Shown: piece by piece, positions 45,982-64,000 of the stretch
How the letters are laid out: each line of letters opens with the position of its first letter
Position numbering within the stretch: position 1 is the stretch's first letter
Source: Hyaloraphidium curvatum SAG 235-1
Taxonomy: Eukaryota; Fungi; Monoblepharomycota
Direction of reading: 5' to 3'
Length of the DNA: 64,000 nt
Assembly (NCBI GenBank): GCA_025558095.1
Contig: JAIVFI010000022.1
Location: forward strand, 124,001-188,000
Position numbers and translations under genes: made by a program
The notes under the pieces: model-generated
What the model was told of the DNA's origin: nothing
Databases searched by the model: none
The model's input: the letters and a program-made list of their open reading frames with translations, nothing else

Positions 45982-47751
45982 TCAAACGACGGCCGGCGTG
46001 CAGTACGTCCCGAGCTGGAGTCTCAGCCCGAATGCCCGGAACAGCGTCGCGCAGACCGTCACTACAGCCACGGTCAGGTTGGCCAGCGACGCCCCCGTCA
46101 CGACGAACCCGAGGAACCTCGCGCGCGGCATGCCCGAGGCGATCCGGTCCATCACGTCGCGGTGGGCGGCCAGGAACGCCGCGAGCTCGGGCGCGTGCGG
46201 GGAGGGGCGGGGGACCAGACGGCGGGACTGCAGGTCCGCGAGGAGGGAGGAGAGGGCGTCGGCCGCTTCGCGGTAGGTCTGCGAGACGGCGGCCGCTCCC
46301 GCGTTGACGAGCGCAACGATGGCCAGCATTAAAACGGAGACGTGCAGCCCGAACAAGGGAAGCGCGAGGCCCCAGGCAGGGTAGCAGGAGCCCCCGGCGG
46401 GCAGCGAGCACAGGAGTGCACCGAACACGCAGACGGCGGTGCCGGCCAGCGGGAAGTGTACGTATGTCGCCGAGGCCACGCTCTGCTGGACGTGCTCCCG
46501 CACGTCCGAGGCAACCCGCGCGTAGAGCTCGGGTAGCGGGTACGAGCCGGATGCTTCGGTCCAGGTGAACGAGTCCGCTGCCACCGGGGAGGCGGCGACG
46601 ACGGAGCGAACGAGGTCCGCACACGCCCCCACAAACTCGCCGCATGCTACGCGAGCTGCTCGGGCCTGAACAACGGTGACCACGCGGCTCCCAATCCAGT
46701 GCATGACGCCGGCTCGCCTCGCTGGAGCGGCCACGACGCACGCAAACCCGGAGATTGCGTACAACGCGACGCATGTCGCGACCCATGGTTGGGTATACAG
46801 TGGACTCGCTCCTCCCGGAGACCGCCACAGATCCCAGAAGCAGAGTGCCATGATAGCAGCCTCGATCCCGCCCGTAACCAACAAGTGGTTCGCGAGAAAT
46901 CGCAACACCACGGTCCATCCTCCCCCGGAAAAGAAACCCAGGCATCTCGAACAGGGGCATGAGTCGGAGCGCTGGAAAACCGGGCTCGCGGGAGCAGAGC
47001 CGGGCTCGGGATCTCCGGCGCCGGCGGAGGGCTTGTACAGCTGCTCCAACGGGCCAAAGTCGCTGCTCGAGGGCTGATGCTGGAGAAGGGAGTACTGCTC
47101 AGGATCCGCACCACCGCGGGCCCAGTACACCGCCAGCGTCGAGGCGTCGTCGCCGACGAGCTCGGGATCCGCCGGCGACGTGAAGTTGGGCGCTATGATG
47201 ATGCGGTGCTGCACCCCGGTGAAGATGCCATAGGCGGCGACGTGGCCAAGCAAGATGCCGACGCAGGCGAGGGCGAACGGGCCCGAAGGCTCCTCGGGGT
47301 CCCGCGCGAGGCCGATTGCGGCCAGTAGCGGGATGCAAGTGAGCTGGACGACGATGTTCCCCCAGAGGAACGGGCCGACGCGCTTCTCCGCGACGGCGAC
47401 CGCGAGCCTCGCCCTCGTCAGCCACGCGAGCGCGCGCAGGCCGCCGCGGGCAAAGACGTCTGCGGCCTCAGCCGCCGACAACGGCGCGACAAGGCGGCTC
47501 AGCAGCGGGCGGTCTTCGGCGGCGGGCAGCGGGAGCGGCGTGCCGCGCGGCCGCTCGGGGTCCGCGACGGACCGGTGCCGCGGGTCCGCGAGGGGCGCGG
47601 CCGCCGCCCGGCGCACCTTCCGCCGGCAGAGGTGCGCGTCGGACCCGGACGCCGCGGTGGCCGGCAGGGCAGAGAACGTGTCCGCGGCGCGCCGGGAGTT
47701 TGTCGGCAGGGCATCTCCGTTCACCGATTTCGGACCAGATGCACCCTCCAT
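45982..47751 (-). CDS. 7-TM membrane protein, paralogue 1 (candidate gustatory-receptor-like ion channel)
   Basis: About 7 hydrophobic segments, CPCSRC loop, CYPAW, C-terminal ARFLGFVVT...TV...YCTP. Motifs are shared with 55363 and 63664. Confidence 0.75.
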   Translation of the reverse strand: MEGASGPKSVNGDALPTNSRRAADTFSALPATAASGSDAHLCRRKVRRAAAAPLADPRHRSVADPERPRGTPLPLPAAEDRPLLSRLVAPLSAAEAADVFARGGLRALAWLTRARLAVAVAEKRVGPFLWGNIVVQLTCIPLLAAIGLARDPEEPSGPFALACVGILLGHVAAYGIFTGVQHRIIIAPNFTSPADPELVGDDASTLAVYWARGGADPEQYSLLQHQPSSSDFGPLEQLYKPSAGAGDPEPGSAPASPVFQRSDSCPCSRCLGFFSGGGWTVVLRFLANHLLVTGGIEAAIMALCFWDLWRSPGGASPLYTQPWVATCVALYAISGFACVVAAPARRAGVMHWIGSRVVTVVQARAARVACGEFVGACADLVRSVVAASPVAADSFTWTEASGSYPLPELYARVASDVREHVQQSVASATYVHFPLAGTAVCVFGALLCSLPAGGSCYPAWGLALPLFGLHVSVLMLAIVALVNAGAAAVSQTYREAADALSSLLADLQSRRLVPRPSPHAPELAAFLAAHRDVMDRIASGMPRARFLGFVVTGASLANLTVAVVTVCATLFRAFGLRLQLGTYCTPAVV

Positions 47752-47974
47752 ATGTACGCAGTTCGAAGCAGGTCAAGTGAGAAAGGTGTTTGCGCGCTTG
47801 TGACAGCAATAATGTGTTGACGGACCTAGCCAAGCGGAAGCGGACCTAGAACTTTCGTATTTCGTAGCTTCGTAGACGTTTACGCGAATTTGACCCGTCA
47901 GACCTGGGAACGGACTGTCCACACGTTCTTGACAGTTCAGTTCATCATTCTCTCACCTGGGGAGCACACAGCGT

Positions 47975-49584
47975 CTACGCGTGCTCCTGGATGATCCTGA
48001 CCACCTTCTCCACCGCCGCCCGCTCGGCCTCCATCCCATCCCCCTCCCAGTCCACCCTTACTATCCAGCCCTCCTGGCCAAGCGCTTCCTGGAACACGTA
48101 CGGCATCTCCTTGTACGCGAGCAGAGCGTCGCCCAGAAGCTCTTCCAGCTCGGCCTTGGTGCGGCGGTACTGGATGTTGGCGGTGCGGCGGATGACGTGG
48201 GCAACGGTGTGCTTGGCAAGCGCGAGGGGTGGAGGCGTGAAGGGCGGGACAAGGAGGGAGGTGTAGTTGGCGTACACGTCGACCTCGGCCGCGTAGCGCA
48301 TCATGTCTATAACGAGGTACCGGATCAGCTGCTTGATCAGTCGAGGGCCAGCCGGTGCCTCTCACCCGGAATGAACACGCCGGGTGGCCGGAGGTTGGCC
48401 TCGAGCACCGTAAACTTGCCCGGGGCGTGCATGAAGAACTCGCAGTGGAACCAGCGTTCGCGCAGCCCGAGCACGTCCTTGACGATCATCTCGCCGAGCT
48501 TGAACAGCACGGGGTCGATGCAGCGGGTGGTGTAGAAGAAGTGATCCCTGTGCTCGTTCACGGCCTCCATGATGCCGCTGCTGTAGACGATGCTCGACGC
48601 CAGCACGAGGTCCCCGCTGCGCGACGCCAGACCGTCGAACGTGACGATGGGCGCGCTGATGAAGTGCTGCGCGATGTAGTCGCCGTGGTTCGACACCGAG
48701 TCCCACCACGCCTTCAGCTCCTCGTCCGAGCCGATCTTATGTGTCGAGACTGCGCCGACGCCCGTGTCGGGCTTGATCACGAGAGGGTAGCCCACGCCAC
48801 CCGGGCCGTGGACGAACGCCATGAGCTCCGAGAGGAATTCCGGGACGATGCCGCCCGGGTTCGCGATGTTGTGCGAGGTAAAAAGATCCCTCATTCCCGA
48901 CTTGGTTCGCATCAGGATCAGGTCCGGCGGCAGCAGGCCGGGGACGTTCAGGTCCTGCCTCAACCGCGATTCGAGCGGGAGCCAAGTCTCGTTGAAGCTC
49001 TCGATCCTGTGGATCCGGCCGTACTTCCACGTAAAGTACCCGCAGGCCTTGAGGCACTCGTCGTAGTCATTGAGGCCGCCTGGCGTCAGGATCTTGTAGT
49101 ACTCGGTCAGGTTCCCCTTCAGATGGTCATCTAAAGTTTCGTAGCCGGCGTCACCGATGCCCAGAACCGTGATCCCGCGTTCCCGAAGAGCACGGGCAAA
49201 GTTCGATACGACTGGCGGGAAGTTTGGGGAGATGAAGACAAAGGTGGAGACGTGCGAGAGCGGGTAGTCCTCGTGGGAAAACTGGTGCGCTTCCGGCGCC
49301 GGCGGCTCGGGCAAGATGGGGCTCTGGTTCGGCGGCGACCGCACGAGGTCGAGCTCCGCGGCGAAGCGCTCGCCGAAAGTCTCGAGGGAGGAGCGGCGCG
49401 GCTTCGTCGGGCTGCCGACTTTGACCTCGACAGGAGACGGCAGCAGATAGGTCCGATGGGAGAAGTACTCCGCCTGGAATGAGCCCTGCCGCGACGCGCC
49501 CGGCTTCGGCGGGATGGGGACGCCCGCGCTGGGCTTGGGCGGCGACCCGACAGGAGTTTTGGCCGGCGGCGGTTTCTCCGACAT
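47975..49584 (-). CDS. ATP-grasp domain protein of bacterial type; intron 48307-48365
   Basis: FVFISPNFP, VLGIGDAGY..L...L...LTEYY, KYGRIHRIESFNETW, GYPLVIKPDTGVGA, FHCEFF, LEANLRPPG..IP|DMMRYA. Confidence 0.85.
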
Positions 49585-49750
49585 GGCAGCCAGCCGCAAG
49601 CTGTGGAGTGCCAGGTGGAGGACCGCGATGCGCGACGGGTGTCGGCCAGAATGGAGTGAAGGTGGAGGACGTGGTCCCTGACGACTCTTCGCGATGGCCT
49701 CATCCGCAGTCCACACTATGCGATCGTATTGCCCTTGATTGCCTCAATAC

Positions 49751-51730
49751 TCACAGCTTTGCCTTGAGCTTCTCCTTGTCCGCCTCCGCCGTCCGGATCA
49801 CGCGCCGCAGAATCTTGCCGCTGGGCGACTTAGGGATCTCGGCCACCAGTTCCACGCCCCCGCGGAGGCGCTTGTGCTGCGCGACGCGTCCCTCAACGAA
49901 GGTAGCGATCTCTTGCGTCGACATTGATCCGGGTTGCTTGAGCACCACCCATGCTTTCGGGAGCTGAACGAAAGTGATGAGGTTGCTGTCACGATCGCCA
50001 GAGATGACGACCTACCTCTCCGGCCATTTCGTCAGGGATGCCGATGACGGCGCAGTCGGCAATCTTGTCGTGGCTCAGTAGCACGGCTTCGAGCTCCGCC
50101 GGCGCGACCTGGAGGCCTGCGATCGAGCATAGATGAGCGATCACCGAAACGAGTACGGCACGACCGAACGGACCCTTGTACTTGATCAGCTCCTTTAGCC
50201 GGTCGGTGATCCAGATAATGCCGTTCGCGTCCACCTTGCCGATGTCGCCAGTCCGGTAGAAGCCGTCTTGGGAAGCAAGTGAGCTAGAGCAATGCCAACG
50301 GCGACCCGAGGCAATCTACCTGGAGTCAGCGACGCCTTGGTCGCCTCCGGGTTCGAGTGGTACCCCTTCATCACTACCAGACCAACAAGTTTAGCGGAGA
50401 ACGTTCGGATCAATCACAGCACGGCCCACCGTTCGGCCCTCTCATCCAGAGCTCCCCCTCCTCATCATAGCCCAGCTCCCTCTCCGTCTCGGGATCCACG
50501 ATCTTGCATTCCATCCCGGGCACCGGCCTCCCCACCGACCCCTGCACGATGGGCTCCCACGCGCGCATGAAGGTCGCGGAGCAGGTCTGCTCGGTCGCGC
50601 CCCAGGTCTGGCGGATCTTGACGCCCAACCGCGCGAGGATCTGCCGCTCGATGTCGGCGGAGAGAGGGGCGGCGCCGGAGGAGATCCAGCGGAGGGAGGA
50701 GAGGTCGTAGTTGTCGACGAGTGGGGATTTGGCAAAGAGGAGGACGATGGGGGGAACGAGAGTGGCGAAGGTGATCTTGTACTTCTGGATGGTCTTGCAG
50801 ACGAGCTCGAGGTCGAACTTGGGGACGATCACGGTGGTGATCCCGCAATAGGGGGCCACGTTGAGGTACCTGTAAGGAATGCGAATGAGGTTCGACATGG
50901 AGGTCGACAAATGAACTAAGAGCTCACATCATGGCTCCGAACATGTGGAAGCATGGGAGGATGCCGATAATCGAGTCGGTCCCTTCCCGGAAGCTGTCCT
51001 TCTCGATGGTCGAGAGCTGGATCGTGTTGGCGATCACGTTGCGGTGTGATAACTCTACGCATTTCGGGAGACCAGTCGTCCTGTTCCGAGGGCATCAGTT
51101 GGCAATCACGCCCGAAAAGATCGAGGAAGCTCACCCCGAGCTGTACGGGAAGATGGCAAAGTTGCGGTCCGACTCATCCCCCCTGAACCCCGGCGTCGGC
51201 ACATTCGGCAGCCCCCTCCCCCTCTTTACCAGGCCCTCGATCGTCTCGTACCCCGGCGGCGGCGGCGCCGGCCCGTCGAACAGCACCACGCACTCCCTCG
51301 GGATGCCGACCTCCTTGCAGGCCACCAGCACGGGTTCCAGGCACGCGACAGCGCAGAGCACGACGGTGATCTCGGACGTGCGGAACTGGTGCACGAGCTC
51401 GAACTGGGTGTACTGCGGGTTGGCACCGCTGACGGTCGCGCCCGTCCAGAGGGTGCCCATGTACGCGGTCGGCCAGTCCAAGTGGTTCGGAGAGACGATG
51501 CCGAGGCAACCTCCCCTGCTCAAACCGCCCCATGGGGAGGATTTGTCCGCCAGCGCGGCGGCGAGGTCCGCGGAGCGCTGGAACCACTCGCCAAAGGTCA
51601 TCGACCTGCCGGTCTCGGCATCAACGTAGGCGACGATGTTTTTGCGGGCGTCGGTGAGCTTGGAGAGGTGCAGGTCGGGGATGGAGAGGTCGGGGATGTC
51701 GATGCGCTCGTCGGTGCGGATGACGACCAT
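49751..51730 (-). CDS. 4-coumarate-CoA ligase-like acyl-CoA synthetase, peroxisomal (PTS1 AKL), multi-exon
   Basis: PYSSG|[63 protein letters not shown]-terminal AKL. Confidence 0.92.
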
Positions 51731-52322
51731 CGTGGCGCGGGAAAGGCGGGGTCGCGGGGTCGCGGGGCGCCAATCGCGCTCGAACGATACGGAAGCAAGC
51801 GCTTGCGGGTGTTCAGGAGCGGAATCGGCTCAATCGGGGTTCAGGCCCTCGGAATCTCGTTGGGCGTGACTCGCGGCGTCCGCGGCTCCACAGCCCAGAA
51901 CGGGTCCCCAAAGGCCGCGATGGCTCGCGGGACCGATAGAAAAGACCAAAAAGGAGGCAACCGACGCCCTGGCTATCCCCCAACACGGCGACCGGCTGCG
52001 CCAGAGCCCGTGGCAAGTTCCGCACTCTCTGAGACGAGCCCCGTCGCACCGCGCCGCGCGATCGTCGTTGCGAACAACGCCGAATCGCGCATGAAACAGT
52101 AAATAAAGCAGCGTCGTTTTAGGCGATGTAAACTAGCAGGTTAATGGATAGCAGAGCCTTATGATGCGGAGAAATGCCAAGCGCTTCGGACTTTGCAAAC
52201 AGAGATCTCTAGCGTAGAGTCCTGCGCTAGAGCAACGAAGCCAGAGTCCTCGGTCGCGTACATAGAGTCCAGCCGCTGCCGAACGGCAGAAAACAGAAGC
52301 GAGCTCCCTCCGCCGAACTCGG

Positions 52323-52916
52323 TCACTTCCGCTTTGTGAGCCCCTTCGCCTTCATCTCCTTCATCACCGCCTTCGCCTCCTCGACCGACAGTCCCCGCGG
52401 ATGCTCCTCGTCGAACTTGCGATTTGCCTCCGCCACCATCTCGGTCTCCTCCCACCCGTTGACCACATCCCAGGCCCGCTTCGGGAAGCTGACGTCCGGG
52501 TCCCTCATGCTGCGGTAGGCCAGCTGCGCCGCGAAGAGCCTCGCCGGCCTCCCCTCCGGCCCCTGGAACGCCGCAAAGCGCGCGTCGCCCGGCTTAACGC
52601 GTCCCTGGAGCAGCTCCATCACCAGCATCATCGCGACGGGGTTGTTGGCCATCGAGTTGGCTGCCTCGCGGGCCTTGTTGGGCAGCGCGGCGTCGATGAA
52701 CCACTGGCGCGCATTGGCGACGTAGCCCTCGGGGTCCTTTTCGCGGTTCGGCGCGGGGATCTCGGCGACGCAGTCGCGCTTGTGCGACGGCCACGCGGCG
52801 CGCTGGCATTCGGAATCGCAGTATGCGGCGCGTTTGCAGTTCGAGCAGCGCGCGAGCTTATCGGGCGGCGGGGGCGCCTCCTTGCCGCAGTGCGCACAGG
52901 ACGCGTAGTACGACAT
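52323..52916 (-). CDS. MYND-type zinc finger protein
   Basis: CAHC...CSNC...YCDSECQRAAWPSHKRDC. Confidence 0.85.
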   Translation of the reverse strand: MSYYASCAHCGKEAPPPPDKLARCSNCKRAAYCDSECQRAAWPSHKRDCVAEIPAPNREKDPEGYVANARQWFIDAALPNKAREAANSMANNPVAMMLVMELLQGRVKPGDARFAAFQGPEGRPARLFAAQLAYRSMRDPDVSFPKRAWDVVNGWEETEMVAEANRKFDEEHPRGLSVEEAKAVMKEMKAKGLTKRK

Positions 52917-53471
52917 CGGCACGGATCGATGGACGTACCAGAGGGTCGGTGGTCTTTGGAAGCAAGGCTCTTGTTTACGCCTGCTCCCCCGGCAGTTCGC
53001 CACAATAAAGCACGTTGGTGTTGGTATATTTATCGGCTGCCCGATCCAAGGCCGAGCGCATCGGACCCAGAAATCGGCCACCTCCAAAGCCGTGATACAT
53101 GTAGTACCTCGCTAGGAGAGATTGTGCAGATCGCGGGACGAGAGCTAGCAGCGCCACAGTGCGCGTGTAGAGTCGTGCGAAGAGATCGCAGATGGCGCAA
53201 CGAAAGAAAAACGTCCGGGGAGGGAGGGTGGGAGCGCGAAAAAGACCGCCCCGCGGGGGCAGCCAAAGACCGTGTGTGCCGCTCACGGCTTGCTCGATGG
53301 CCCCATCCAAGCCGTGAGCTGCTTTGCCAAACAGTCCCACCCATCCTCTGCCCTTTTCCCGGCAAGGGCATTGCCTCGGTATGCAGGCGTGAATGGGTTT
53401 GGCTGCGCTCTGGCATCGTTCTTCAGTCGCCGCTCCGCCCAACCTCCGTTCCGCGATTCAGTTAGGGATGG

Positions 53472-53589
53472 TGCAGTCGCTGCTCGTCCGCGTACGCTGG
53501 AACAGCGCACCCTAAGGCGAACGAGGCCGCGCCATTAAGCAGGCGCAGGCCCCGGGCAACGCGCCCGATAGGAGGTCCGCAAACTCCCA
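53472..53589 (+). repeat. 118-bp direct repeat, copy 2 (orphan intron+exon fragment of 43537-43654)
   Basis: 3 mismatches; flanks are unrelated to copy 1. Confidence 0.92.
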
Positions 53590-54352
53590 GGGATGCGCTC
53601 TCGCTCGCTGAGCGCACCGCGGCCACACGACTTTCTCCCCACAAAGCGCACGACAAACCCGCGTCCCGCCGCGCGTCCCGCCGTTAGTTGCGGAGAACGG
53701 GAATGGCGACGGGATCGGCGCAACGAACGCTTGCCGTCCCCGATGGCCACGCCTCCTCTTCCTCCGCGACAGGCCCGATGGCGTCTTTGACCGCCTCTTA
53801 GCTCTCGCGCGCGACGACCGCGCCCGAAGACCTGCGCGCGAGGCGCAACAGATCAACCCGCTTATCGAGCAGAGCAGGCGAAGCGTTAACCCGTCGGCAG
53901 CGTCAGTAGGACTTAGAGGAGCGCCCGGACGCGACGGCACATCGTCGAAGAAGAGGCTCGTCCTGTCCACCTCGCGTGCTTCTTCCCATCCCCTGCTGCT
54001 CTGGACCCGCCGGCGGAAGCGGGATCTGGCCCATTGGCCGCCCGGGCCGCCTTCGCCGCTTTCCCAAAGAAGGGTCCAGCCATGAGCCCAGGTCATCAAA
54101 CCGCCTTTCCCGCCGCACCGCGCCTCCGACGGCAGAACGATGTTTGCAGCGATCTTACAAGTGCCCTCCAAAACTGCTGGGGTGCAGGCGCCCTTTCGTG
54201 TGCCCGATCCGATTCCGCGTTCAGTATCTCGGGGCTGGCTGATGGACCGCGGCGAGGAACATTCCATTGGCCTTTCCCCGTTTCCGCGAACGATAAAACC
54301 CGCCTCGCCGATCGCCGGACCCGCGGTCAGCACTCCCCGCCCCACGACGCCG

Positions 54353-55222
54353 ATGCGCTGCGCGGTCCTCGGCACGGGCGCCATGGGCGCCGCCGTCGCG
54401 CGCGCGCTGCTGAAGAAGGGCCACTGGGTGGCCGCGTGGAACCGCACGGCGGCAAAGGCCGAAGCGCTGGTCGGGGACGGGGCGACGCCGTGCGCGACGC
54501 AGGCCGAGGCCATTGCAGCGGCCGACGCCGTCTTTTCTGTGCTCGCCGACGTCGACATGTTGCTTGCAACGCTCGACGCGCCCGCGGCTGCCGAAGCCGT
54601 CTGGTCCAAGGTCGTCGTCAATTTCTCCACGTGCACCCCCGCCGAGGCGCGCAAGCTTGAAGCACGCTGCAGCGAGCTCGGCGCGCGGCTGCTGGACGGC
54701 AAGCTACTCTTCTACCCCGCCTCGGCCGGCACCCCCGAAGCCTCGATCGCCGTCTCCGGCCCCGCGGACGCCTACGCCGCCGTGCTCGCGCCCCTCGAGG
54801 CGATCGGCGCCCCTACGCACCACGGCACGGGGATCGGCACCGCCTCGGCCGTCGACCTCGCCATGCTCGGCCTGCTGGGCGCGGCCGTGGTCGCCGCGGC
54901 GCACGCGGCCCGCTTTGCCGAGGCCGAGGGGATCCCGCCCCAGGCCATCGCGGGGGTGCTGCGGGGAATCTCCGCCGCCGTGCTGGCCCCCGAGGTGGAG
55001 CGCATCATGGACCGGATCGGGACGGGGGGCGGGTTCGGCGAGACGGAGGCGGCGGTGGCCACGTGGAAGGGGGTCGCGAGCAAGTTTGCCGCGCACTCCG
55101 GGGCGCTCAAGATCCCCGGTGGATTTGCCGAGTCGCTCGAGGCGCTGTGGCAGAAGGGCGTCGACATGGGGATCGGAGGCGAGGACGCTGCGGCGCTCGT
55201 CAAGGTGCTTAGGGACGGCTAG
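54353..55222 (+). CDS. NAD(P)-dependent oxidoreductase, beta-hydroxyacid-DH/imine-reductase-like, copy A
   Basis: VLGTGAMGAA, WNRTAAKAEAL, VNFSTCTP, LDG, ASAVDLAML; intronless. Confidence 0.85.
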   Translation: MRCAVLGTGAMGAAVARALLKKGHWVAAWNRTAAKAEALVGDGATPCATQAEAIAAADAVFSVLADVDMLLATLDAPAAAEAVWSKVVVNFSTCTPAEARKLEARCSELGARLLDGKLLFYPASAGTPEASIAVSGPADAYAAVLAPLEAIGAPTHHGTGIGTASAVDLAMLGLLGAAVVAAAHAARFAEAEGIPPQAIAGVLRGISAAVLAPEVERIMDRIGTGGGFGETEAAVATWKGVASKFAAHSGALKIPGGFAESLEALWQKGVDMGIGGEDAAALVKVLRDG

Positions 55223-55362
55223 GCCGGGACGGTTCACGGAACAGAGCGTGTGGAGCTACCCGAACTTTAACAGAAGACGTTTATGTTTCGTCGTTCCTCA
55301 ACCTGCAATCCGCGGCACTTCCATCCCGGCGCAGCGTCCCGCACGCCGAGACCGGGGCCACC

Positions 55363-56937
55363 TCACCCTCCCGGGCAGTACGACTCCAGCACCACCCTCA
55401 CCCCCAGCCCGTTCAGCAGCCCCCACAGGGCAAACAGCACCGTCAGCAGCGAGACCAGCAGCGCCCTCGCGGTGCCGAAGGTCACCTCGAACCCCGCGAA
55501 CCGCGCCGGTTCGGCGGAGGAGGCGAAGGCGTCCAGCCGCCGGGAGAGGGCATCCAGACGGCGCTGCAGGGCGGCGAGGCGGGATGCGGCAATGTTGTCG
55601 GGGAGGGGGGCTAGGGAGGCAGAGAGGGAGAGGAGCGAGAGGGCCTCGGCGAACCCGGCGCGGACGACCGCCTTCACGGCACCGATCCGAGCGTTGGCGC
55701 CCGCGAGGTCGGCGAGGAACGAGCCGACCACGAACAACCACCAGGCGACAAAGGCGAGCTCCCAGGCGGGTATGCACCTGCCGGCTGCGAGGTTGGCGGC
55801 GGCGGCGGGGACGAAGAAGAGGGCGACGAAGGAGAAGCGCTGGATGACGGCGGTCTGCTGCTGCAGGGGGATGGTCCAGGAGGCGGCAATGTGGCGGAGG
55901 AGGTCGAAGAGGAAGGGTTCCGCGGAGTCTTTGGGGGCCGCGGGTGCTCCGTCGCCGGCGGCTGAACCGGGTATGCCACTCGGAACCTGTCCACCTTCCA
56001 CCGGCACTCCGGTCGGCGCCCCCACGATCTCATCGAGGGCCGTCCTATACCCCGTGAGCACCTCCGCCAGCTGCACGTCCACGGCCCTGCACTGCATCCT
56101 CTTCGAGAGCTGCATCATCGGCGGCTTCGGCCGGCGGAACAGCACCGCACACAGCGGGAACAGGAAAGCGAGGCCGAACACGAGGATGAAGGCGCCGAGG
56201 AGCGCGCCGTACCATGTCCGCCAGAAGACCGGGGCCAGCGCGACTGCGGGCGTCCAGAGGGGGAAGAGAAAGGTCTGCGCGAACACCGTGATGGAGCGGA
56301 AGAAGGTCTCGGCCACCGTGTAAATGCCCTCCCAGAACGGCAGCCGCCCGGCGCAGCCGGCAAGGGTGCAGGGGCAGTTTGGATCCCCCGGCACGTGCTC
56401 GACAAGGGGCAAGGACCGCGGGCGGGCGAGTTCCAGGCCGTCCGCGCCTTTTCCGGATCCACCGAGGTCCTGCCACCGCAGCAGCGCGTGCAACTTGTGC
56501 TTCCCGGGGTCGAAGAGGAGCTTCCAGTCGTTCAGCAGCAGGGACGAGGTGAGGACCACGAGGGCCACCAGGGGAAGCGCAACCGCGACCGTTCCGGCGG
56601 CCAGATTGACAGTACCGAAGGGTGCCGTGGTGCCGACCAGCGCCGGGTACAGCGCGAGAACCGGGGCGACAAGCAGCTGTGCCGCGAGCCCAAGAGCGTA
56701 GAGCACGGCGCCGGGCCGGCCCGCTGCCGCCCCGAAGAACACCGCGACGGCACCGAGGAGCCGGGAGGACCGCCGGGCCGCGGTCAGGAGCGCGTGCGCC
56801 GTCGGCAAGGTCGATTCGCGGAGTGAGCGCGCTTCGGCGATGGGCGGCGTGGGGCCGGCGGGGGGCAGGCTGCGCAGCGCGGCAGGGGGTTCGGCGAGGT
56901 CCGGAAGCGCCGCAAGGAGCTCCTCCGGGGTCAGCAT
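55363..56937 (-). CDS. 7-TM membrane protein, paralogue 2 (candidate gustatory-receptor-like ion channel)
   Basis: 7 hydrophobic segments, CPCTLAGC loop, CIPAW, LAGAN, ARFAGFEVT...LLTV..ALW...ESYCP. Confidence 0.78.
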   Translation of the reverse strand: MLTPEELLAALPDLAEPPAALRSLPPAGPTPPIAEARSLRESTLPTAHALLTAARRSSRLLGAVAVFFGAAAGRPGAVLYALGLAAQLLVAPVLALYPALVGTTAPFGTVNLAAGTVAVALPLVALVVLTSSLLLNDWKLLFDPGKHKLHALLRWQDLGGSGKGADGLELARPRSLPLVEHVPGDPNCPCTLAGCAGRLPFWEGIYTVAETFFRSITVFAQTFLFPLWTPAVALAPVFWRTWYGALLGAFILVFGLAFLFPLCAVLFRRPKPPMMQLSKRMQCRAVDVQLAEVLTGYRTALDEIVGAPTGVPVEGGQVPSGIPGSAAGDGAPAAPKDSAEPFLFDLLRHIAASWTIPLQQQTAVIQRFSFVALFFVPAAAANLAAGRCIPAWELAFVAWWLFVVGSFLADLAGANARIGAVKAVVRAGFAEALSLLSLSASLAPLPDNIAASRLAALQRRLDALSRRLDAFASSAEPARFAGFEVTFGTARALLVSLLTVLFALWGLLNGLGVRVVLESYCPGG

Positions 56938-57100
56938 GGCGCGATTCCGTCTGTTCTCGTCTCCGTTCTCTGCGGACAATCAATTGTTCTCGAGGGCGAT
57001 GAAACTGCGCGATCGACAGAACCAACGTGGAGCTCCGGCCGTCCTGTTTCAAGTCATCTCGTTTCCTACTCGCCCCTGCAACGAAATCAACTGGTTCATG

Positions 57101-57997
57101 CTAAGGCACCAAGCTCCACTCCCAGCTCGGCGCGGCCTCGAACGCGGCCCTGATGGACCTCGGCCTAGCCCCGTCCACGTCCGCGAACCCGTACTCCTCC
57201 CCCAGCTCCGCCGTCACCTGCACCGTCCCCGTCCTTTCCATCACCTTGGGATCGGCGGCGAGCGCGGCGACCGCGCGCCCGACAAACACCGGCGACTCGG
57301 AGTTGGAAAAGTCGAACACGCACGCGCGTAGTGTGCCCTCGGTGCGCACCAGGCCCGGGTACAGCGAGACGGCGGCCACGTGGTGCTGGCGGAGGTGGTT
57401 CGCGAACGCCGCGGCCATGCGGTCGTCGGCGTTCTTGGCGAGGTGGTACGGCACGTTCTCCCCGCCCCTGTGCGCGGAGCCGGAGAAGTAGCTCACGTTG
57501 ACCACCAGCCCCGGCTTCTCAGCCGATGCCGACCGGATCATCAGGGGGGCAGCCAGCTGGGTAGTCGTGTAGTGCGCCCGCACGGAACCGAGCATGTCGT
57601 CCAGCATCCGCGCGGGCTGCTCCCAGAAGGGCGCGGCCCAGAGGAGGCCGCGGTCGTCCATGAGTTGCATGCCTTCGTACCCCGACCAGACGTTGTTGAC
57701 GAGGAGGTCCAGCCTCCCGGCGCGTTTCTCGAGCTCTGCGATCGCCGCGCGGACGTGCGCGTCGTCCGAGTGGTCGCACCTGAGGGGGATTATTTGCCCC
57801 CTTGCGCCGGACGCCTCGCACTCTGCCGCCGCGTCCTCCAGGCTCCCCGCCAGCATCGGCAGCTCCGGGTTGCGCCCCTTTAGCGTGCGTGCGGAGGCGA
57901 ACACGGTCGCGCCGGCCTGCGCGAGGGCGAGCGCGACGCCGCGGCCCACGCCCCGAGACGCGCCCGTGACGAGCGCGACGCGGCCTTCGAGGGACAT
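57101..57997 (-). CDS. Short-chain dehydrogenase/reductase (DHRS1-like)
   Basis: VALVTGASRGVGRG, CDHSDD, LLVNNVW, PFWEQP, YHLAK, SLYPGLVRTE, ESPVFVGRAV. Confidence 0.9.
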   Translation of the reverse strand: MSLEGRVALVTGASRGVGRGVALALAQAGATVFASARTLKGRNPELPMLAGSLEDAAAECEASGARGQIIPLRCDHSDDAHVRAAIAELEKRAGRLDLLVNNVWSGYEGMQLMDDRGLLWAAPFWEQPARMLDDMLGSVRAHYTTTQLAAPLMIRSASAEKPGLVVNVSYFSGSAHRGGENVPYHLAKNADDRMAAAFANHLRQHHVAAVSLYPGLVRTEGTLRACVFDFSNSESPVFVGRAVAALAADPKVMERTGTVQVTAELGEEYGFADVDGARPRSIRAAFEAAPSWEWSLVP

Positions 57998-58284
57998 TGG
58001 AAGGGTGCTGCGCCGCGATTCCGGGCGGGCCGTTGCGGCGAGGCGGCGGGGAGACGTTGAGACGGACGCATCGGCAACAAGCAAACAGAGCCACGTGCGG
58101 CCGCTCTCCCTCGATCGCGAGTCCGGCGCCCGATCATCTTCTTATCCTCCGTCCGGCCTTCTGCTTCCCCGACTTTGGTCGTTACCCCCGTGGATTCTGT
58201 TTGGTTCCGGCCGGCCGGTCGCCTCCGGAAGGGCCGACGCCCGACAGCCTGCAGACGCCGAGGGATTTCGCCGTCGGCATTGAG

Positions 58285-60331
58285 ATGCCAACGAGCGGGC
58301 CGGCGGCGGCGGATCCCGGCGGGCAGGCGGACGCCGCGGAGGGAGCTTCCCGCGGACGGCCGCGCCTGGCGTGCGAGCGGTGCTTCCGCGGCCGCAAAAG
58401 ATGCGTCTGGCCGGACGACCCCGCGCGCCCGTGCGACCGCTGCGACCGGCTGGGCCACAAGTGCGAGCCGCGGGACGCGGGGAACCCCGCGCGGGGGAGG
58501 GAGAGCGGGTCGGGGACGCTCAGCGCGGGCTCGGCGGCGGACGCGCGGACTGAAGCGTCGGCCCGCGAAAGCGGCAGCGCCTCTCCCGGTCCGGCCTTGC
58601 CCTCGGGCGACCTGCTGGCGCGGGAGGATATTCTTTTCGCCTGCATCTCGATTTATTGGGAGACGACGCACGTGCCGGTGCCGGTTGTTCACAGGGCCAC
58701 CTTCGAGGCCGCCTTCCTCCGCGGCGCCTCAGACGTGTACGGCCCCCACAAACCAGCGGCGCTGCTCTGCATGCTCGCCGCGCACGGCGCAACGTTTGCA
58801 TCCTTGCCCGGCCTCTCCCGCGACGCGCACCAGACGCTCGCCTGCCTGTACGCCGACCGGGCCAGGGACCTGCTCGCGGCCGGGCGCCACGGCCCTGGTC
58901 CGCCGACCGTGTCCGACGTCGAGTACGCGCAGGTGCTCGTGCTCCTCGTGAGGCACTACGTTTCGCAGGGCGGCCCCACCGAGGCCGCGGCGCTGCGCGA
59001 CCAATCGTCGGACCTGCTGGACGGCGTGCTGCGACGGGCGACGGGACCCGACGGCACGCCGTTCGGCGGCTCTTTCGCGCCCACGGACCCCGCGGAGTGG
59101 GTCCGCTCCGAAATCTTCATGCGCTGCGCCGTCACCGCGGGCCACAGCGACGCCAACACCGCGGCGGTGCTCCAGCGGCGCGCAGGGACGGCCCGCTTCG
59201 ACTACTACTCCGGCCGCGTGCCGATGCCGTGCCACGACATCTACTTCGAACTCCCCTCGGCCGAGGACGCGTTCCGAATCCTCTCCTCCCGCGACCACCC
59301 CCGCTCCGTCGCCAACCCCGCCCCCTTCCTCGCCCCTGAACCCAACTTTGCCCTCTGCGCCGCCCTCGCGCGGCACCTCGTCTCCTCCCTCTTCTCCCTC
59401 CGCGCCGGCCGCCTCGTCCTCCCGTACCTCTTCGACCTCCTCACGGGCCTGCAGACCCGCGCCCGCGCCGCCGCCGCCCGCGAGGGCATCGACCCCCTCG
59501 CCCTGGCCTCGCAGCCCCCCGAACTCGACACCCCGACCGAGGCCGCGCAGCGCAGGAGGACGGAGCTCGCCGCCCGCCTCGCGGGCGAGATCCTCCGCGC
59601 CTTCCCATCCCCCGCCGGCGACGCGCTGGCCGAGGGCGACCCCGCGCCGCTGTTCTCGATCGCCGAAACCCACCTGGGCGGCGAGCCCGCGGTGCACGCG
59701 GTGTGTTCCATGGCCGCCGGCTTCCACACGCTCGCCATATCGGCGTGGGTGCAGGGCGACCCGTCGTCCGCGTCGCCCGCCTTCTTCTCGTCCGCCCCCT
59801 TGGCGGCCGCGTTGGAGGGGGGGATCGCCGCCGCGAGGGTGATGGCCTTCCAGCTGGCCCGCTCGCCCGGTTCCGTGCCGGGGAGGTGCCACCAGACGGC
59901 GTTCCTGGCCGCGGTGCGGACGCTCACCCTGCAGGCCGCCGTGGCGCGGGCGGGGGGTGCGGAGCGGGTGGCGGAGGACGCGGGGGCCGCGATGGCGTAC
60001 GCGACGGCGTTTGCGGAGGCGTATCCGGCAGGTGGGTCTCTTGGTTGCCGCGGGGATCGGAAGCGGGGCTGACGCCGACTTCCGGGTGGCAGGGAGGAAA
60101 CCGGTGCGGGATCTGCTTGCCCTTTTTGCGACTGCGGGGCTGGACCTCGCGCGGGGCGGATCGTCGCCGGCCGCCCGCGCCGTCCCCGATGTCCTGCCCC
60201 CGGGGGCGCATGGCGACGCGGCGGTGGAGGAGCTGACGCGGAGGTTCGCGGCGACGGTGATGGTGTCGGAGGAGCTGCTGGGGCGGGTCGTGGGCCGCGC
60301 CGGGGAAGGGGACGAGGCGGGCGGGCCGTGA
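58285..60331 (+). CDS. Zn(II)2Cys6 transcription factor with fungal middle-homology region; intron 60032-60092
   Basis: ACERCFRGRKRCVW...PCDRCDRLGHKC; YWE....PVVHRATF. Confidence 0.88.
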
Positions 60332-60624
60332 TGGGGCGGGATACCGGACTCCCGTCGGCGGGCTGTGCAAAGGACGTGAGGGCGCGGCGGATTGGCTCGT
60401 GGAGGGCAGCGCTCTATTCCCCCAATCTACGTCCCAAGTATCCAACGCCAAATTGTCAATTCTCCTCTCGTGTGCCCGCCTCCGATGTCCACGGGCAGAC
60501 GGCCCGGCGACGCCGCACTCAAACACTTGCGAGGCCCGTTCTCCGGGCAGCATCCCTGGTAGAGTCCGTCGACGAGGGTCAGAGCTCCCGGGTAGGAGCT
60601 GGACGTCCTGCAGTAGAGCGTCGC

Positions 60625-61506
60625 CTAACCGTTCCTCAGCACCTTGACCAGCGCCGCGGCATCCTCCCCGCCGATCCCCATGTCGACGCCCTTCTGCCAC
60701 AGCCCCACGAGGGACTCGGCGAACCCACCCGGGATCTTGAGCGTCTCGGCGTGGGCCACGACCTTGCTCGCGGCCCCGTGCCACGTCGCCACCGACACCT
60801 CCGTCCCGGCAAAATCGCCGGTCCCGATCTTTTCCACGATCCTGTCTACCTCGGCCCCCAGCAGCCCCGACACGCCCCGCAGCACGCCCGCGATGGCGGG
60901 CAGCGGCACCCCCTCGGCCTCGGCGAACCGCGCCGCGTGCGCCGCGGCGACGGTGACCGAGCACGACAGGTTGAGCATGGCGAGGTCGACGGCGGCGGCG
61001 GTGCCGATGGCCGTGCCGTAATGGGTGGGAACGCCCATGGTCTCAAGCGGGGCGAGCACGGCTTCGTACGCGTCCGTCGGGCCGGACAGGGCGATGGCCG
61101 CGTCCTGCGTGCCGGCCGAGAGCGGGTAGAAGAAAAGCTTCCCGTCGACTAGACGGGCGCCGATTTCGGCGCAGCGTGCGTCCAGCTCGCGGGCCTCGGC
61201 TGGCGTGCATGTGGCAAAGTTGACCAGCACCTTGGATTTCGCGGCGTCGGCGGCCTCGGGCGCCTTCAGAATGGCCAGAAACGCGTCGACGTCCCCCAGA
61301 ACCGAGAAGACGGCGCCCGACGCGGCGATGGCTCCGGCGGGCGTCGCGAACGCGGTCGCCCCATCGGCGACGAGTGCTTCGGCCTTTGCGGGGGTGCGGT
61401 TCCACGCGGCCACCGCGTGGCCCTTCTTCAGCAGGGCGCGGGCGAGGGCGGCGCCCATGGCGCCGGTCCCGATGACGGCGCAGGGGATCGGAGCCGCGGG
61501 CGGCAT
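60625..61506 (-). CDS. NAD(P)-dependent oxidoreductase, imine-reductase-like, copy B
   Basis: IGTGAMGAA, WNRTPAKAEAL, AAAVDLAML. The C-terminus LWQKGVDMGIGGEDAAALVKVLR is identical to copy A. Confidence 0.85.
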   Translation of the reverse strand: MPPAAPIPCAVIGTGAMGAALARALLKKGHAVAAWNRTPAKAEALVADGATAFATPAGAIAASGAVFSVLGDVDAFLAILKAPEAADAAKSKVLVNFATCTPAEARELDARCAEIGARLVDGKLFFYPLSAGTQDAAIALSGPTDAYEAVLAPLETMGVPTHYGTAIGTAAAVDLAMLNLSCSVTVAAAHAARFAEAEGVPLPAIAGVLRGVSGLLGAEVDRIVEKIGTGDFAGTEVSVATWHGAASKVVAHAETLKIPGGFAESLVGLWQKGVDMGIGGEDAAALVKVLRNG

Positions 61507-61630
61507 CGTGTCGAGTGTTGACCGCGGTGGCGGTGCGATGGGGCGGCGATCGGGCGGAGCTGGGCATGCACCCTCCTTCGATCCGCGACGAAAGATAAGG
61601 ATCGAAACTTGAATTGAAGCGGCTCTGTCT

Positions 61631-62818
61631 TTACGGCTCCGACTGCGCGTCCCCGGACGCGCTCCCGCCGTCGGATGTCTCCGAATCATCCCCACCTTGC
61701 GATCCCGGGCCGTCCTCGGCGGCGCCTCCATCTTCCGAGCCTTCCTCAGCTGCGAGGGCATCCCGGTTCCGCACTGCCCACTCCATCTGCCGCCAAAATG
61801 CCTGGGTCTCCTCGTCCGCACCGCCGTCCTCCACCACGAGCGTCCGCAGCGCCGGCAGCGAGCGCAGCAGCGGCACGATCGCCCCCCTTTCCCACTGCGA
61901 CAGGGGCCCGATTCGCAGGTCCTCCAGCCGGAGCGACTCCAGCGAGCGCGGCATGCGGAGGAGCACGGATGTCAGGGAGGTGAAATCCGGCAGGGAGAGC
62001 ACGGCGGCGTCGCGGACGGTGCGCATGCGCCGGAGGGCTTCCAGTTCGGACGTGTAGATCAGGGCCCGGTGCGCAGGGTCGTAGACCGGCGTGTCGGTCG
62101 GGTAAACGACGATGCTGCGGAGAGCGATGCCGGGGATGGAGTCGATGATCTGGCGGAAAGCTTCGGGAACGCCCCAGAGGGCCGTCATGCTGCGAACCAC
62201 GTGGTCCGGCAGGGGCAGGTGAGGCCCCTGGTACTCGTGCCAGCAGGCTTCCCAATCGACGCTCAACCTCAGGTTGCGGATGCCTTGGTGCAGGCCGGCG
62301 GCGAGCGTCCACAGGCCCCTCCACGAGTCGCGGGCGCAGACGATGTCGACGTCGAGGACGTTGGGCGGCACGGCGAGCTCCCCGAGGCGGTCTCCCGTGC
62401 CGTCCTCGCACTGCAGGCACAGGCGGACCAGGCTGCGGGCCCGCGCGATCGCATCCGTCAGGTGGAGCGCGCTGGCCGCCGTGAAGCCCGCCGAGAGCTC
62501 CACAAGATGCGGCGCCGCGAGCTGCACCAGGCGCGCGCGCCGCCGGTCGAGCCCGGTGACGCCGAGCCGCGTGAGCTGCAGCCGCCGCACCCACGCAGCG
62601 GGCTGGCCGCGGATGAGGAAGTCGAGCTGGGACGGGGCGGGGTCGCGCACGTCGCGGTGGAGCACGGGGAGCACAAGCGGGAGAAGTCGGCCGCACGTGC
62701 GGCCGAGCCGCGACAGGGCCTTCGGGTCCCCGCGGGGCTTGGCTACGAACTCGGCCATCAAAGTGATGAGCTCGGGAGGCAGGTCAGAGAGTGCAGGGGC
62801 GGGCTCCGGGGCGGACAT
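61631..62818 (-). CDS. F-box-like/LRR protein
   Basis: LSDLPPELITLMAEF...LSRLGRTCGRL, then LRR-like LxxLxL repeats (LRSLPALRTLVV, SLESLRLEDL) and an acidic tail. Confidence 0.7.
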   Translation of the reverse strand: MSAPEPAPALSDLPPELITLMAEFVAKPRGDPKALSRLGRTCGRLLPLVLPVLHRDVRDPAPSQLDFLIRGQPAAWVRRLQLTRLGVTGLDRRRARLVQLAAPHLVELSAGFTAASALHLTDAIARARSLVRLCLQCEDGTGDRLGELAVPPNVLDVDIVCARDSWRGLWTLAAGLHQGIRNLRLSVDWEACWHEYQGPHLPLPDHVVRSMTALWGVPEAFRQIIDSIPGIALRSIVVYPTDTPVYDPAHRALIYTSELEALRRMRTVRDAAVLSLPDFTSLTSVLLRMPRSLESLRLEDLRIGPLSQWERGAIVPLLRSLPALRTLVVEDGGADEETQAFWRQMEWAVRNRDALAAEEGSEDGGAAEDGPGSQGGDDSETSDGGSASGDAQSEP

Positions 62819-62989
62819 TGTGCGCGGGTTTGTGGTGACGTGGCAGAGAATCACCAGTGGTTGCAAACAAGTCAAGAGATTGGCCGCCCCAATCACACGC
62901 ATGCAATGGCACGAGACGTCGCCTCCTGTACAGGATCTCGTCATCGGCCCTGCGTGATCCGTCCCGCGAAGAGGCGGGTTTCGCCTCAG

Positions 62990-63574
62990 TCAGCACCTCA
63001 GCTCCTCCCTGATCTGGGCGATCTGCCTCCCCCCGAACCGCGCCTCCGCCTCCCGCGCCACGACGCTCCTCGTTTTCATCCTGTCGACGTACAGCACCCC
63101 GTCGAGGTGGTCCACCTCGTGCTGCAGGATCCGCGCCGGCCACCCCGACGCGCGCCACGCGACCGGGTTGCCGTCCGCGTCCGCGCCCGCGACTTCAACC
63201 TCGAGCGCGCGCTCCACCAGCGCCGCGTAGCCGGGCACTGAAAGACAGCCCTCGAAGAACACTGCAGTCGCGTCCCCGATCTTCGTCAGCACGGGGTTCA
63301 CCACCACCCGCGTGCCGGTCTCCACCCGGCCCCTCTCCTCCCTCTCCGCCGGCGTCAACCGCGCCATCCTTTTCTCCGTGTCCTCGACAACAATGACCCG
63401 CCACGGCTCGCCGATCTGCGGCGCGGCGATGCCGACACCCGGCGCGGCGCGCAGCGATTCGAGCATCCGCGAGACGAGCGCGCGGAGACCGGGGGTGCCG
63501 AGCATCGAGGCGGGGACGGGGCGCGCGGGGGCGCGGAGGACGGGGTCGCCGGCGACGACGATGGGGTCGGGCAT
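62990..63574 (-). CDS. def: Peptide deformylase (type 1A-like)
   Basis: GDPVL, GVGIAAPQIG, EGCLS, QHEVDHLDG; intronless. Confidence 0.92.
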   Translation of the reverse strand: MPDPIVVAGDPVLRAPARPVPASMLGTPGLRALVSRMLESLRAAPGVGIAAPQIGEPWRVIVVEDTEKRMARLTPAEREERGRVETGTRVVVNPVLTKIGDATAVFFEGCLSVPGYAALVERALEVEVAGADADGNPVAWRASGWPARILQHEVDHLDGVLYVDRMKTRSVVAREAEARFGGRQIAQIREELRC

Positions 63575-63663
63575 CGCGGGTGGCGGGGAAGCGGGATGGG
63601 AGCACCCTCGGGGTGTGCAAACTCTGGGACGAGCGTGCCAAAGGCAGCATCCAGCCGTCAGGC

Positions 63664-64000
63664 TCACGAGCCCGGGCACACCGACTCGATCGTGAAGCTC
63701 ACCCCCGCCCCCCTGAGCACGCTCCACAGCGCCACCGACAGCGTCACGGTGGTCACCAAGAGCGTCTTTGCGAGCCCCCAGGTCACCACGATCCCCACGA
63801 AGGTCGCCCGCAGGTTGTCCGCGGCGCACAGGGACGTCAGCAGGACGACGTGTTCCCGAAGCTCTGCGGCAGCGGGCTGCCCGTGCACCCTTGCGGCCTC
63901 GGCGAGCATGGCCTGGAGCGCGGTGCGCGCATCGAGGTAGAGTGACCGGACGTCGTCGATCTGGTCGTTGGCGGCGGGAAGCTGCGCGAGGTCGACGCAG
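63664..64000 (-). CDS. 7-TM membrane protein, paralogue 3, C-terminal part only (5' end outside the window)
   Basis: AANDQIDDVRSLY...ATFVGIVVTWG...LVTTVTLSVALW..LRGAGV...ESVCPGS*. Confidence 0.72.
   Translation of the reverse strand, partial: CVDLAQLPAANDQIDDVRSLYLDARTALQAMLAEAARVHGQPAAAELREHVVLLTSLCAADNLRATFVGIVVTWGLAKTLLVTTVTLSVALWSVLRGAGVSFTIESVCPGS

Follow-up and report, generated by a model that had tools for sequence, protein, structure and literature searches.

A very large, intronless family of seven-helix membrane proteins with a predicted insect receptor-like channel fold in the fungus Hyaloraphidium curvatum

Three open reading frames (ORFs), here termed copies A, B and C, lie on the minus strand of a 64-kb stretch of the genome of Hyaloraphidium curvatum SAG 235-1, a fungus of the Monoblepharomycota. 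This stretch, referred to as the window, comprises positions 124001 to 188000 of contig JAIVFI010000022.1 (C22:124001-188000; other contigs are abbreviated in the same way) in a genome of 31.9 Mb, 55 contigs and ~68% GC. The three ORFs belong to a very large (~300-450 genes), rapidly diversifying and intronless family, so far found only in H. curvatum, which is predicted to share the fold of the seven-transmembrane ion channels (7TMICs) typified by the insect odorant and gustatory receptors (Or/Gr), and whose members may, by analogy, act as ligand-gated sensory channels. A probability of roughly 0.7 is attached to this reading. In fold, topology and repertoire size it fits best as a novel and enormously enlarged fungal version of a 7TMIC.

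An earlier reading of the window, made from its sequence and referred to here as the sequence-only reading, had proposed three minus-strand, intronless paralogues, and ORFs were found exactly where it had placed them (Table 1). A hidden Markov model (HMM) of the family, built like the conservation figures given below from 125 aligned members, matches copies A, B and C with E-values of 8.6e-69, 2.4e-111 and 1.8e-41, respectively, and has no further match anywhere in the window. A and B are only distantly related, with 22% identity overall and 34% over the C-terminal 137 amino acids (BLASTP, E = 8e-7). The open frame of copy B extends upstream to a TTG at 56979; its start is placed at the ATG at 56937 because the conserved N-terminus of the family matches there, M1 being present in 96% of members. 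Copy A carries two extras, a disordered N-terminal arm of ~75 amino acids and an enlarged intracellular loop 1, and belongs to a small and divergent subfamily of ~9 loci genome-wide, several of which are broken. Copy C runs off the end of the window; the portion inside it spans the end of the helix 6 extension, helix 7a, a hairpin, helix 7b and the tail, and is 74% identical to the C-terminus of one paralogue.

The topology of the family was examined by projecting the helices of the AlphaFold2 model of copy B onto the 125 aligned members and recording loop lengths and charges. There is no signal peptide, and seven membrane helices are joined by long loops after transmembrane helices (TM) 2, 4 and 6 (medians 56, 72 and 65 amino acids) and by short ones after TM1, TM3 and TM5 (11, 8 and 4), followed by a tail of 14. 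Lysine and arginine are concentrated on the side of the long loops, with means of 8.4 in the N-terminus and 5.4, 9.1 and 7.9 in the loops after helices 2, 4 and 6, as against 0.5, 0.4 and 0.06 in the loops after helices 1, 3 and 5 and 0.6 in the C-terminal tail. With ~30.8 such residues inside and 1.6 outside, the positive-inside rule places the N-terminus in the cytoplasm and the C-terminus outside, which is the inverted topology of the insect receptors. Hydropathy peaks agree with the seven helices of the models, S3 being the weakest. The cytoplasmic N-terminus, the approximately seven TMs and the long loops after TM4 and TM6 of the sequence-only reading are thus all recovered, and neither an N-out orientation nor a helix number other than seven was encountered.

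In the AlphaFold2 models of both B and A, seven membrane-length helices are arranged in the Or/Gr order. The model of B, made with 20 aligned paralogues, has a mean predicted local distance difference test score (pLDDT) of 87 and a predicted template modelling score (pTM) of 0.86; that of A, made with a different, 125-row alignment, has values of 80.7 and 0.81. In model B, residues 242-306 form S4 and its extension, 339-386 an extension and S5, and 391-441 S6 and its extension; these are followed by helix 7a (448-474), a two-strand hairpin (479-484) over the A-R-F-x-G-F-x-V-T motif and helix 7b (487-510). The equivalent elements occur in the same order in model A. Secondary structure and aligned ranges indicate that S4, S5, S6 and 7a extend far into the cytoplasm, as in the anchor domain of Or/Gr channels, and the splitting of TM7 into 7a, hairpin and 7b is predicted with pLDDT values above 90.

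Both models were searched against 48,161 chains from the Protein Data Bank (PDB). For each of them, all eight Or/Gr representatives were the best full-length matches, with 85-96% of the target covered in sequential order. In Foldseek, the top six entries for B and the top 14 for A were all Or/Gr proteins, at probabilities of 0.97-1.00. Syntaxin and STAT entries interleaved among the high matches for B span only ~150 residues of long cytoplasmic helices. G protein-coupled receptor (GPCR), transporter and respiratory-complex folds were considered and set aside: Complex I antiporter-like subunits, MATE, NRAMP and some further proteins appeared only at Foldseek probabilities below about 0.15 and TM-scores of ~0.1. 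Thus the proposed resemblance to insect Or/Gr channels is supported at the level of the fold by two separately modelled copies, the predicted split of TM7 is present in both, and it is Or/Gr channels, rather than GPCRs or transporters, that rank first. Beyond the PDB, a fold search of the ESM atlas returned unnamed cnidarian clusters as its best entries (TM-scores 0.48-0.60), which is compatible with a likeness to animal proteins of the gustatory receptor-like type (GRLs). A language-model atlas search gave low recognition, the nearest entry being an unnamed 455-residue cluster with Heimdallarchaeota; this is a lead at most, 7TMICs of Heimdall archaea having been described in a 2023 preprint (10.1101/2023.08.30.555482).

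Although members of the family may be only 20-25% identical, about 20 residues are near-invariant among them, including (in B numbering) H181, D185, C188, C190, C195, R284, C388, N415, G482, R491, T499 and C521. The motifs on which the sequence-only reading had relied are all present and conserved across the alignment: AAxNARI after TM6 (N415, 99%), ARFxGFxVT (G482, 98%), the terminal YC-P (C521, 97%), C-x-P-A-W before TM6 (C388, 99%) and CPC-x2/4-C (C188, C190 and C195, 99-100%). To these can be added H181 (100%) and D185 (94%), which lie beside the CPC cysteines and were absent from that list, and T499 (97%). Conserved columns cluster in a few islands, namely the loop-1 motif, outer loop 3 with its four residues, the hairpin and helix 7b. 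Among the membrane helices it is 7b that shows the highest conservation (mean top-residue frequency 0.55). The N-terminal cytoplasmic helix also carries a conserved motif, M-x3-T/S-P-x-E-L/W-L-A-x-L-P, in which 95% of members keep P12 and which is modelled at a pLDDT of ~95. Possibly it serves to bind a partner or to direct trafficking; the insect receptors have no conserved N-terminal tag of this type.

Two of the conserved elements would be new to an otherwise well-studied channel scaffold. The loop-1 motif, H-x3-D-x2-C-P-C-x4-C, is cytoplasmic, is modelled in B with pLDDT values of 93-95 without regular secondary structure, and has a ratio of nonsynonymous to synonymous substitution (dN/dS) of 0.24. 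Since one histidine and three cysteines sit here in a reducing compartment, a zinc knuckle is suggested, and the motif would probably bind zinc and thereby brace or regulate the protein on its cytoplasmic side. C388 in outer loop 3 and C521 in the tail are both predicted to lie outside, and in model B short strands at 388-390 and 514-516 are paired. A disulfide between them, within or between subunits and near the pore mouth, could therefore form as far as topology is concerned. Both of these elements, a bond from CxPAW to the C-terminal cysteine and a metal-binding CPC loop, had been suggested before and fit the predicted topology. The insect receptors have neither the knuckle nor such a pair of cysteines, and their loop 1 is shorter.

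The sequence-only reading had also anticipated, from three diverged copies in one fungus, a large lineage-specific repertoire, and this expectation is borne out. When copy B was used to search its own genome, at least 118 matching stretches, corresponding to at least ~80 loci, were found among the best 82 of 665 first-look candidates that were scored. A 125-row profile yielded 889 first-look candidates, the best 86 of which were essentially full-length, all with E-values of 1e-92 or below; as every scored locus still reaches this value, the end of the family must lie beyond them. A DNA pattern for part of the loop-1 motif, D-x2-C-x-C-x(2-4)-C-x-G, has 363 matches in the genome against 51 for a reversed control, an excess of ~310. 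Finally, when 1.84 billion representative proteins were searched with a family profile, matches came from 429 clusters (50% identity) at E<=1e-3, 256 of them at E<=1e-30. Species were sampled for 20 of the 429 clusters and all 20 were single H. curvatum proteins, although the weak tail may hold distant relatives from other organisms. Among the proteins that searches returned, 21 are annotated as 'hypothetical protein DFJ74DRAFT_...' [Hyaloraphidium curvatum]. Taken together, these counts point to a family of about 300-450 genes.

Family copies are dispersed on nearly all contigs. The nearest relatives of B lie on contigs 43 and 33 (63% and 58% identity), those of A on contigs 15, 46 and 27, and those of C on contigs 27 and 42; judged by these relationships, the three copies in the window are not local duplicates. 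A truncated relative, comprising only the last 180 amino acids at 68% identity, is found at C22:201297-201842.

Copies A and B are intact, and the genes are under purifying selection, with dN/dS values of 0.31-0.55 in 13 pairs of paralogues. When the values are pooled by region, helix 7b is the slowest helix (0.16), while S5 (0.92), S1 (0.74), S2 (0.53) and S4 (0.52) evolve fastest. By analogy, a channel family diversified for ligands would be expected to show this combination of a constrained pore helix and fast-evolving bundle helices. Copy C may be either a pseudogene or the victim of an assembly error. Its two halves match a relative in different frames (C22:187673-188269 and C22:188242-189147), so that it may carry a frameshift; the two matches overlap at C22:188242-188269, some 242-269 nucleotides beyond base 64000 of the window. 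The closest relatives of copy A (C15:69723-71435, C46:47541-48731 and C22:652216-653888) include a gene with an in-frame TAG ~70 codons before its end, a copy truncated after an in-frame stop and a copy split over two frames. Decay thus seems to proceed more quickly in this small subfamily than in the main one.

There are also indications of transcription. One public sequencing run, guessed to be RNA, contains 80% of the sampled words of copy B, and its contigs are colinear with the genome over 55390-56729 (1340 nucleotides of B), without joints and at a depth of 16. Depths on the adjacent genes are 1839, 0, 7 and 44, with nothing on the stretches between genes. Because depth is so uneven across genes, the run looks like a transcriptome, which suggests that copy B is transcribed, unspliced, at a low level.

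The insect channels Orco, MhOr5 and BmGr9 provide the analogy from which a mechanism can be proposed, and the family probably forms ligand-gated tetrameric channels of the same kind. The subunits would assemble through the cytoplasmic anchor, with the four 7b helices lining a central cation pore. Binding of a small ligand within the variable helical bundle of each subunit would then gate the pore, the loop-1 knuckle would brace or regulate the cytoplasmic face and the outer cysteines could be linked near the pore mouth. Acting in this way, the family would serve as a repertoire of environmental or nutrient-sensing receptors.

Several observations weigh against this proposal. The Foldseek E-values for Or/Gr proteins are weak (0.007-0.03), with TM-scores of 0.25-0.42 and root-mean-square deviations of 5-6 Å, and the models of both A and B were made from alignments of paralogues of a single genome. 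A Pfam scan of A, B, C and 20 members, to E<=10, found no match to 7tm_6, 7tm_7, Trehalose_recp or DUF3537; the hits that it did return, to phage portal, YrhK and Patched families, were scattered and were discarded as chance. Comparison of the family profile with all PDB sequences likewise returned no Or/Gr chain, and its two matches, at E>1, were to coiled-coil or low-complexity sequence and are attributed to chance. At the level of sequence profiles there is thus no sign of homology with Or/Gr proteins, and the likeness is one of predicted fold. The TM7 motif of Gr proteins, T-Y-h-h-h-h-h-Q-F, is kept at one of four positions at best: helix 7b of copy B reads T499-V-L-F-A-L-W-G-L, in which only the threonine could correspond. 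The RNA nature of the public run is a guess. Finally, H. curvatum is not known to have a swimming stage, which makes it hard to see what a chemosensory repertoire would be used for.

Searches of word-indexed protein collections with the whole protein, the alignment or the C-terminal region returned one or two paralogues each. As alanine-rich words saturate the candidate list, these searches are uninformative on relatives elsewhere. The intron that precedes the last exon in Gr/GRL and Or genes is not present, A and B being single open frames and most scored paralogues full-length open ones; many protist GRLs likewise have no intron at this position (PMC7746228).

How the family stands to known 7TMICs can be summarized as follows. 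Its sequence identity to insect Or/Gr proteins of known structure (Orco 6C70, MhOr5 7LIC, AaegOR10 8V00, AgamOR28 8V3C, BmGr9 8VC1 and DmGr43a 8JM9) is 6-10%. It differs from them in being fungal and intronless and in its lack of the Gr TM7 motif, and no member resembling a conserved co-receptor was identified. Parallels are offered by the GRLs of unicellular eukaryotes, which were also assigned by topology, loop lengths and predicted structure (PMC7746228). Benton, Dessimoz and Moi (2020) described one in each of two Spizellomyces chytrids (SpunGRL1 and SpalGRL1); Thecamonas and Vitrella have six apiece (PMC7746228). The chytrid proteins keep only one of the four TM7 motif positions (PMC7746228), as does the Hyaloraphidium family at best. 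By these published descriptions, single genes or sets of six contrast with the ~300-450 considered here. Plant DUF3537 proteins (PF12056), which form small families of 4-12 genes, belong to this fold superfamily as a branch outside the animals and share its topology (PMC7746228); 20 Hyaloraphidium members have no match to this profile.

A further group is formed by the eukaryotic 7TMICs of the PHTF-like Class B (Benton and Himmel 2023, PMC9998090; Himmel et al. 2023, preprint 10.1101/2023.08.30.555482). Intracellular loop 1 of PHTF is described as long (10.1101/2023.08.30.555482), and that of the Hyaloraphidium family is enlarged, with a median of 56 amino acids and ~89 in copy A. As the PDB has no PHTF structure, the comparison is one of described loop length. 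PHTF is a low-copy, conserved gene. Himmel et al. traced 7TMICs across the tree of life, mentioning fungal members only in Chytridiomycota and Blastocladiomycota (10.1101/2023.08.30.555482). No mention of Hyaloraphidium together with 7TMICs was found in the papers searched, supplementary lists of the published screens aside.

The most serious competitor to ligand-gated sensing accepts the 7TMIC fold and gives it another use. The proteins would be constitutive channels, transporters, scramblases or membrane scaffolds, expanded for purposes such as self/non-self recognition or surface diversity. This is considered unlikely, although it draws on the fact that the function of all non-animal 7TMICs is unknown (PMC7746228; 10.1101/2023.08.30.555482) and that PHTF and many unicellular 7TMICs may yet have roles of this sort. 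The absence of a known motile stage would also suit it. So would the His/Cys knuckle and the conserved N-terminal helix, which hint at intracellular partners that the insect receptors do not have. However, a constrained 7b, fast bundle helices and hundreds of divergent paralogues together form the pattern of ligand-diversified receptor families, and a single housekeeping function would not need ~400 copies.

It might be objected instead that the resemblance to Or/Gr channels is itself a product of convergence or of modelling bias, AlphaFold having drawn an unrelated seven-helix family towards a fold on which it was trained; the low TM-scores and single-genome alignments noted above leave some room for this. 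Yet the models of A and B, two copies of 22% identity with different alignments behind them, both have the full set of eight Or/Gr representatives as their best full-length matches among the 48,161 chains. Hydropathy, charge distribution and loop lengths, none of which depend on a model, agree with them, and the unusual 7a-hairpin-7b split is confidently predicted, so that this explanation appears very improbable. Least credible of all is the view that the family is selfish or decaying DNA, spread by retroposition or as a mobile element, with most copies of no function to the organism. Its genes are indeed intronless in a genome with introns and lie on nearly all contigs, and there are broken copies, with in-frame stops and frameshifts, in the subfamily of A and probably in C. 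Against this stand the overall dN/dS of 0.3-0.55 and the 0.16 of helix 7b, the near-invariant residues kept despite low identity and the full-length open frames of most scored loci. Copies A and B are also flanked by ordinary, unrelated genes with short spacers and no repeats, and B appears to be transcribed. A family of ligand-gated sensory channels with the 7TMIC fold thus remains the preferred reading.

Table 1. Coordinates in the window of the three family members and of their principal features
Feature	Position	Strand	Remarks
Copy A, whole gene	45982-47751	minus	intact, unspliced, 589 aa
Copy A, loop-1 motif H225...D247...C265-P-C267-x2-C270	46942-47079	minus	columns invariant or near-invariant in the 125-member alignment
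Copy A, helix 7a, beta-hairpin (ARFLGFVVT) and helix 7b (putative pore helix)	46033-46194	minus	DSSP of model: H520-539, E545-546/E549-550, H553-573
Copy B, whole gene	55363-56937	minus	intact, unspliced, 524 aa counted from ATG
Copy B, residues 1-15, N-terminal helix motif	56893-56937	minus	conserved family-wide
Copy B, loop-1 motif L-x2-H181-x3-D185-x2-C188-P-C190-x4-C195-A-G197	56344-56406	minus	94-100% conserved, 125 members
Copy B, outer loop between helices 5 and 6, four residues, with C388 of C-x-P-A-W	55768-55779	minus	C388 in 99%
Copy B, helix 7a (448-474), beta-hairpin (475-486, ARFAGFEVT) and helix 7b (487-510, putative pore-lining)	55408-55596	minus	DSSP
Copy B, C521, cysteine of the outer C-terminal tail	55375-55377	minus	conserved in 97%
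Copy C, last 111 aa	63664-63999	minus	frame read from base 63999; feature to 64000; gene runs off window end

Compared with other members, copy A has insertions within its loop-1 motif. Genes next to the three copies encode an AMP-binding enzyme, a MYND-finger protein, two reductive-aminase-like dehydrogenases, a short-chain dehydrogenase, a fungal-type transcription factor and a peptide deformylase. The AMP-binding (acyl-CoA ligase-like) gene, at 50410-51730 on the minus strand, is read in two open frames covering profile positions 8-172 and 226-378. The 220-nucleotide gap between them, at 50911-51130, probably represents introns and a small exon; splicing thus occurs in this genome, though not in the receptor family. 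A single contig of the public run (51300-52980, depth ~1840) covers the 5' part of this gene and most of the MYND-finger gene, and is ~100 times deeper than copy B. The genes at 54140-55222 (plus) and 60625-61821 (minus) are paralogues of the NAD(P)-binding reductive-aminase/6-phosphogluconate-dehydrogenase-like type (NAD_binding_2 and RedAm-like_C); 5 kb separates the two, which are oppositely oriented, and one adjoins copy B. ORFs of 459 and 437 amino acids at 48337-49716 and 61631-62944, both on the minus strand, have no Pfam match. No GATG arrays above background were found upstream of A and B.

One may go further, though decidedly tentatively, and suppose that a non-motile planktonic fungus independently built an insect-scale repertoire of ligand-gated 7TMICs, amounting to ~400 genes or roughly 3% of its total, in which a zinc knuckle and an outer disulfide couple or stabilise gating. 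Such a repertoire would be a genuine chemosensory system in a fungus. Outside animals and plants, 7TMICs have been reported so far as single genes or handfuls. If the channel reading is correct, the Hyaloraphidium family would far exceed in size any such repertoire known from fungi and would be the first large radiation of 7TMIC receptors outside animals; expanding this fold into massive receptor-like sets would then not be an animal invention. It would provide a tractable, intronless set of genes in which to study the diversification of ligand pockets in this class of channel, with hundreds of natural variants through which structure could be related to function in the pore helix and the pocket. 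The question of what 7TMICs do outside animals would thereby become directly testable.

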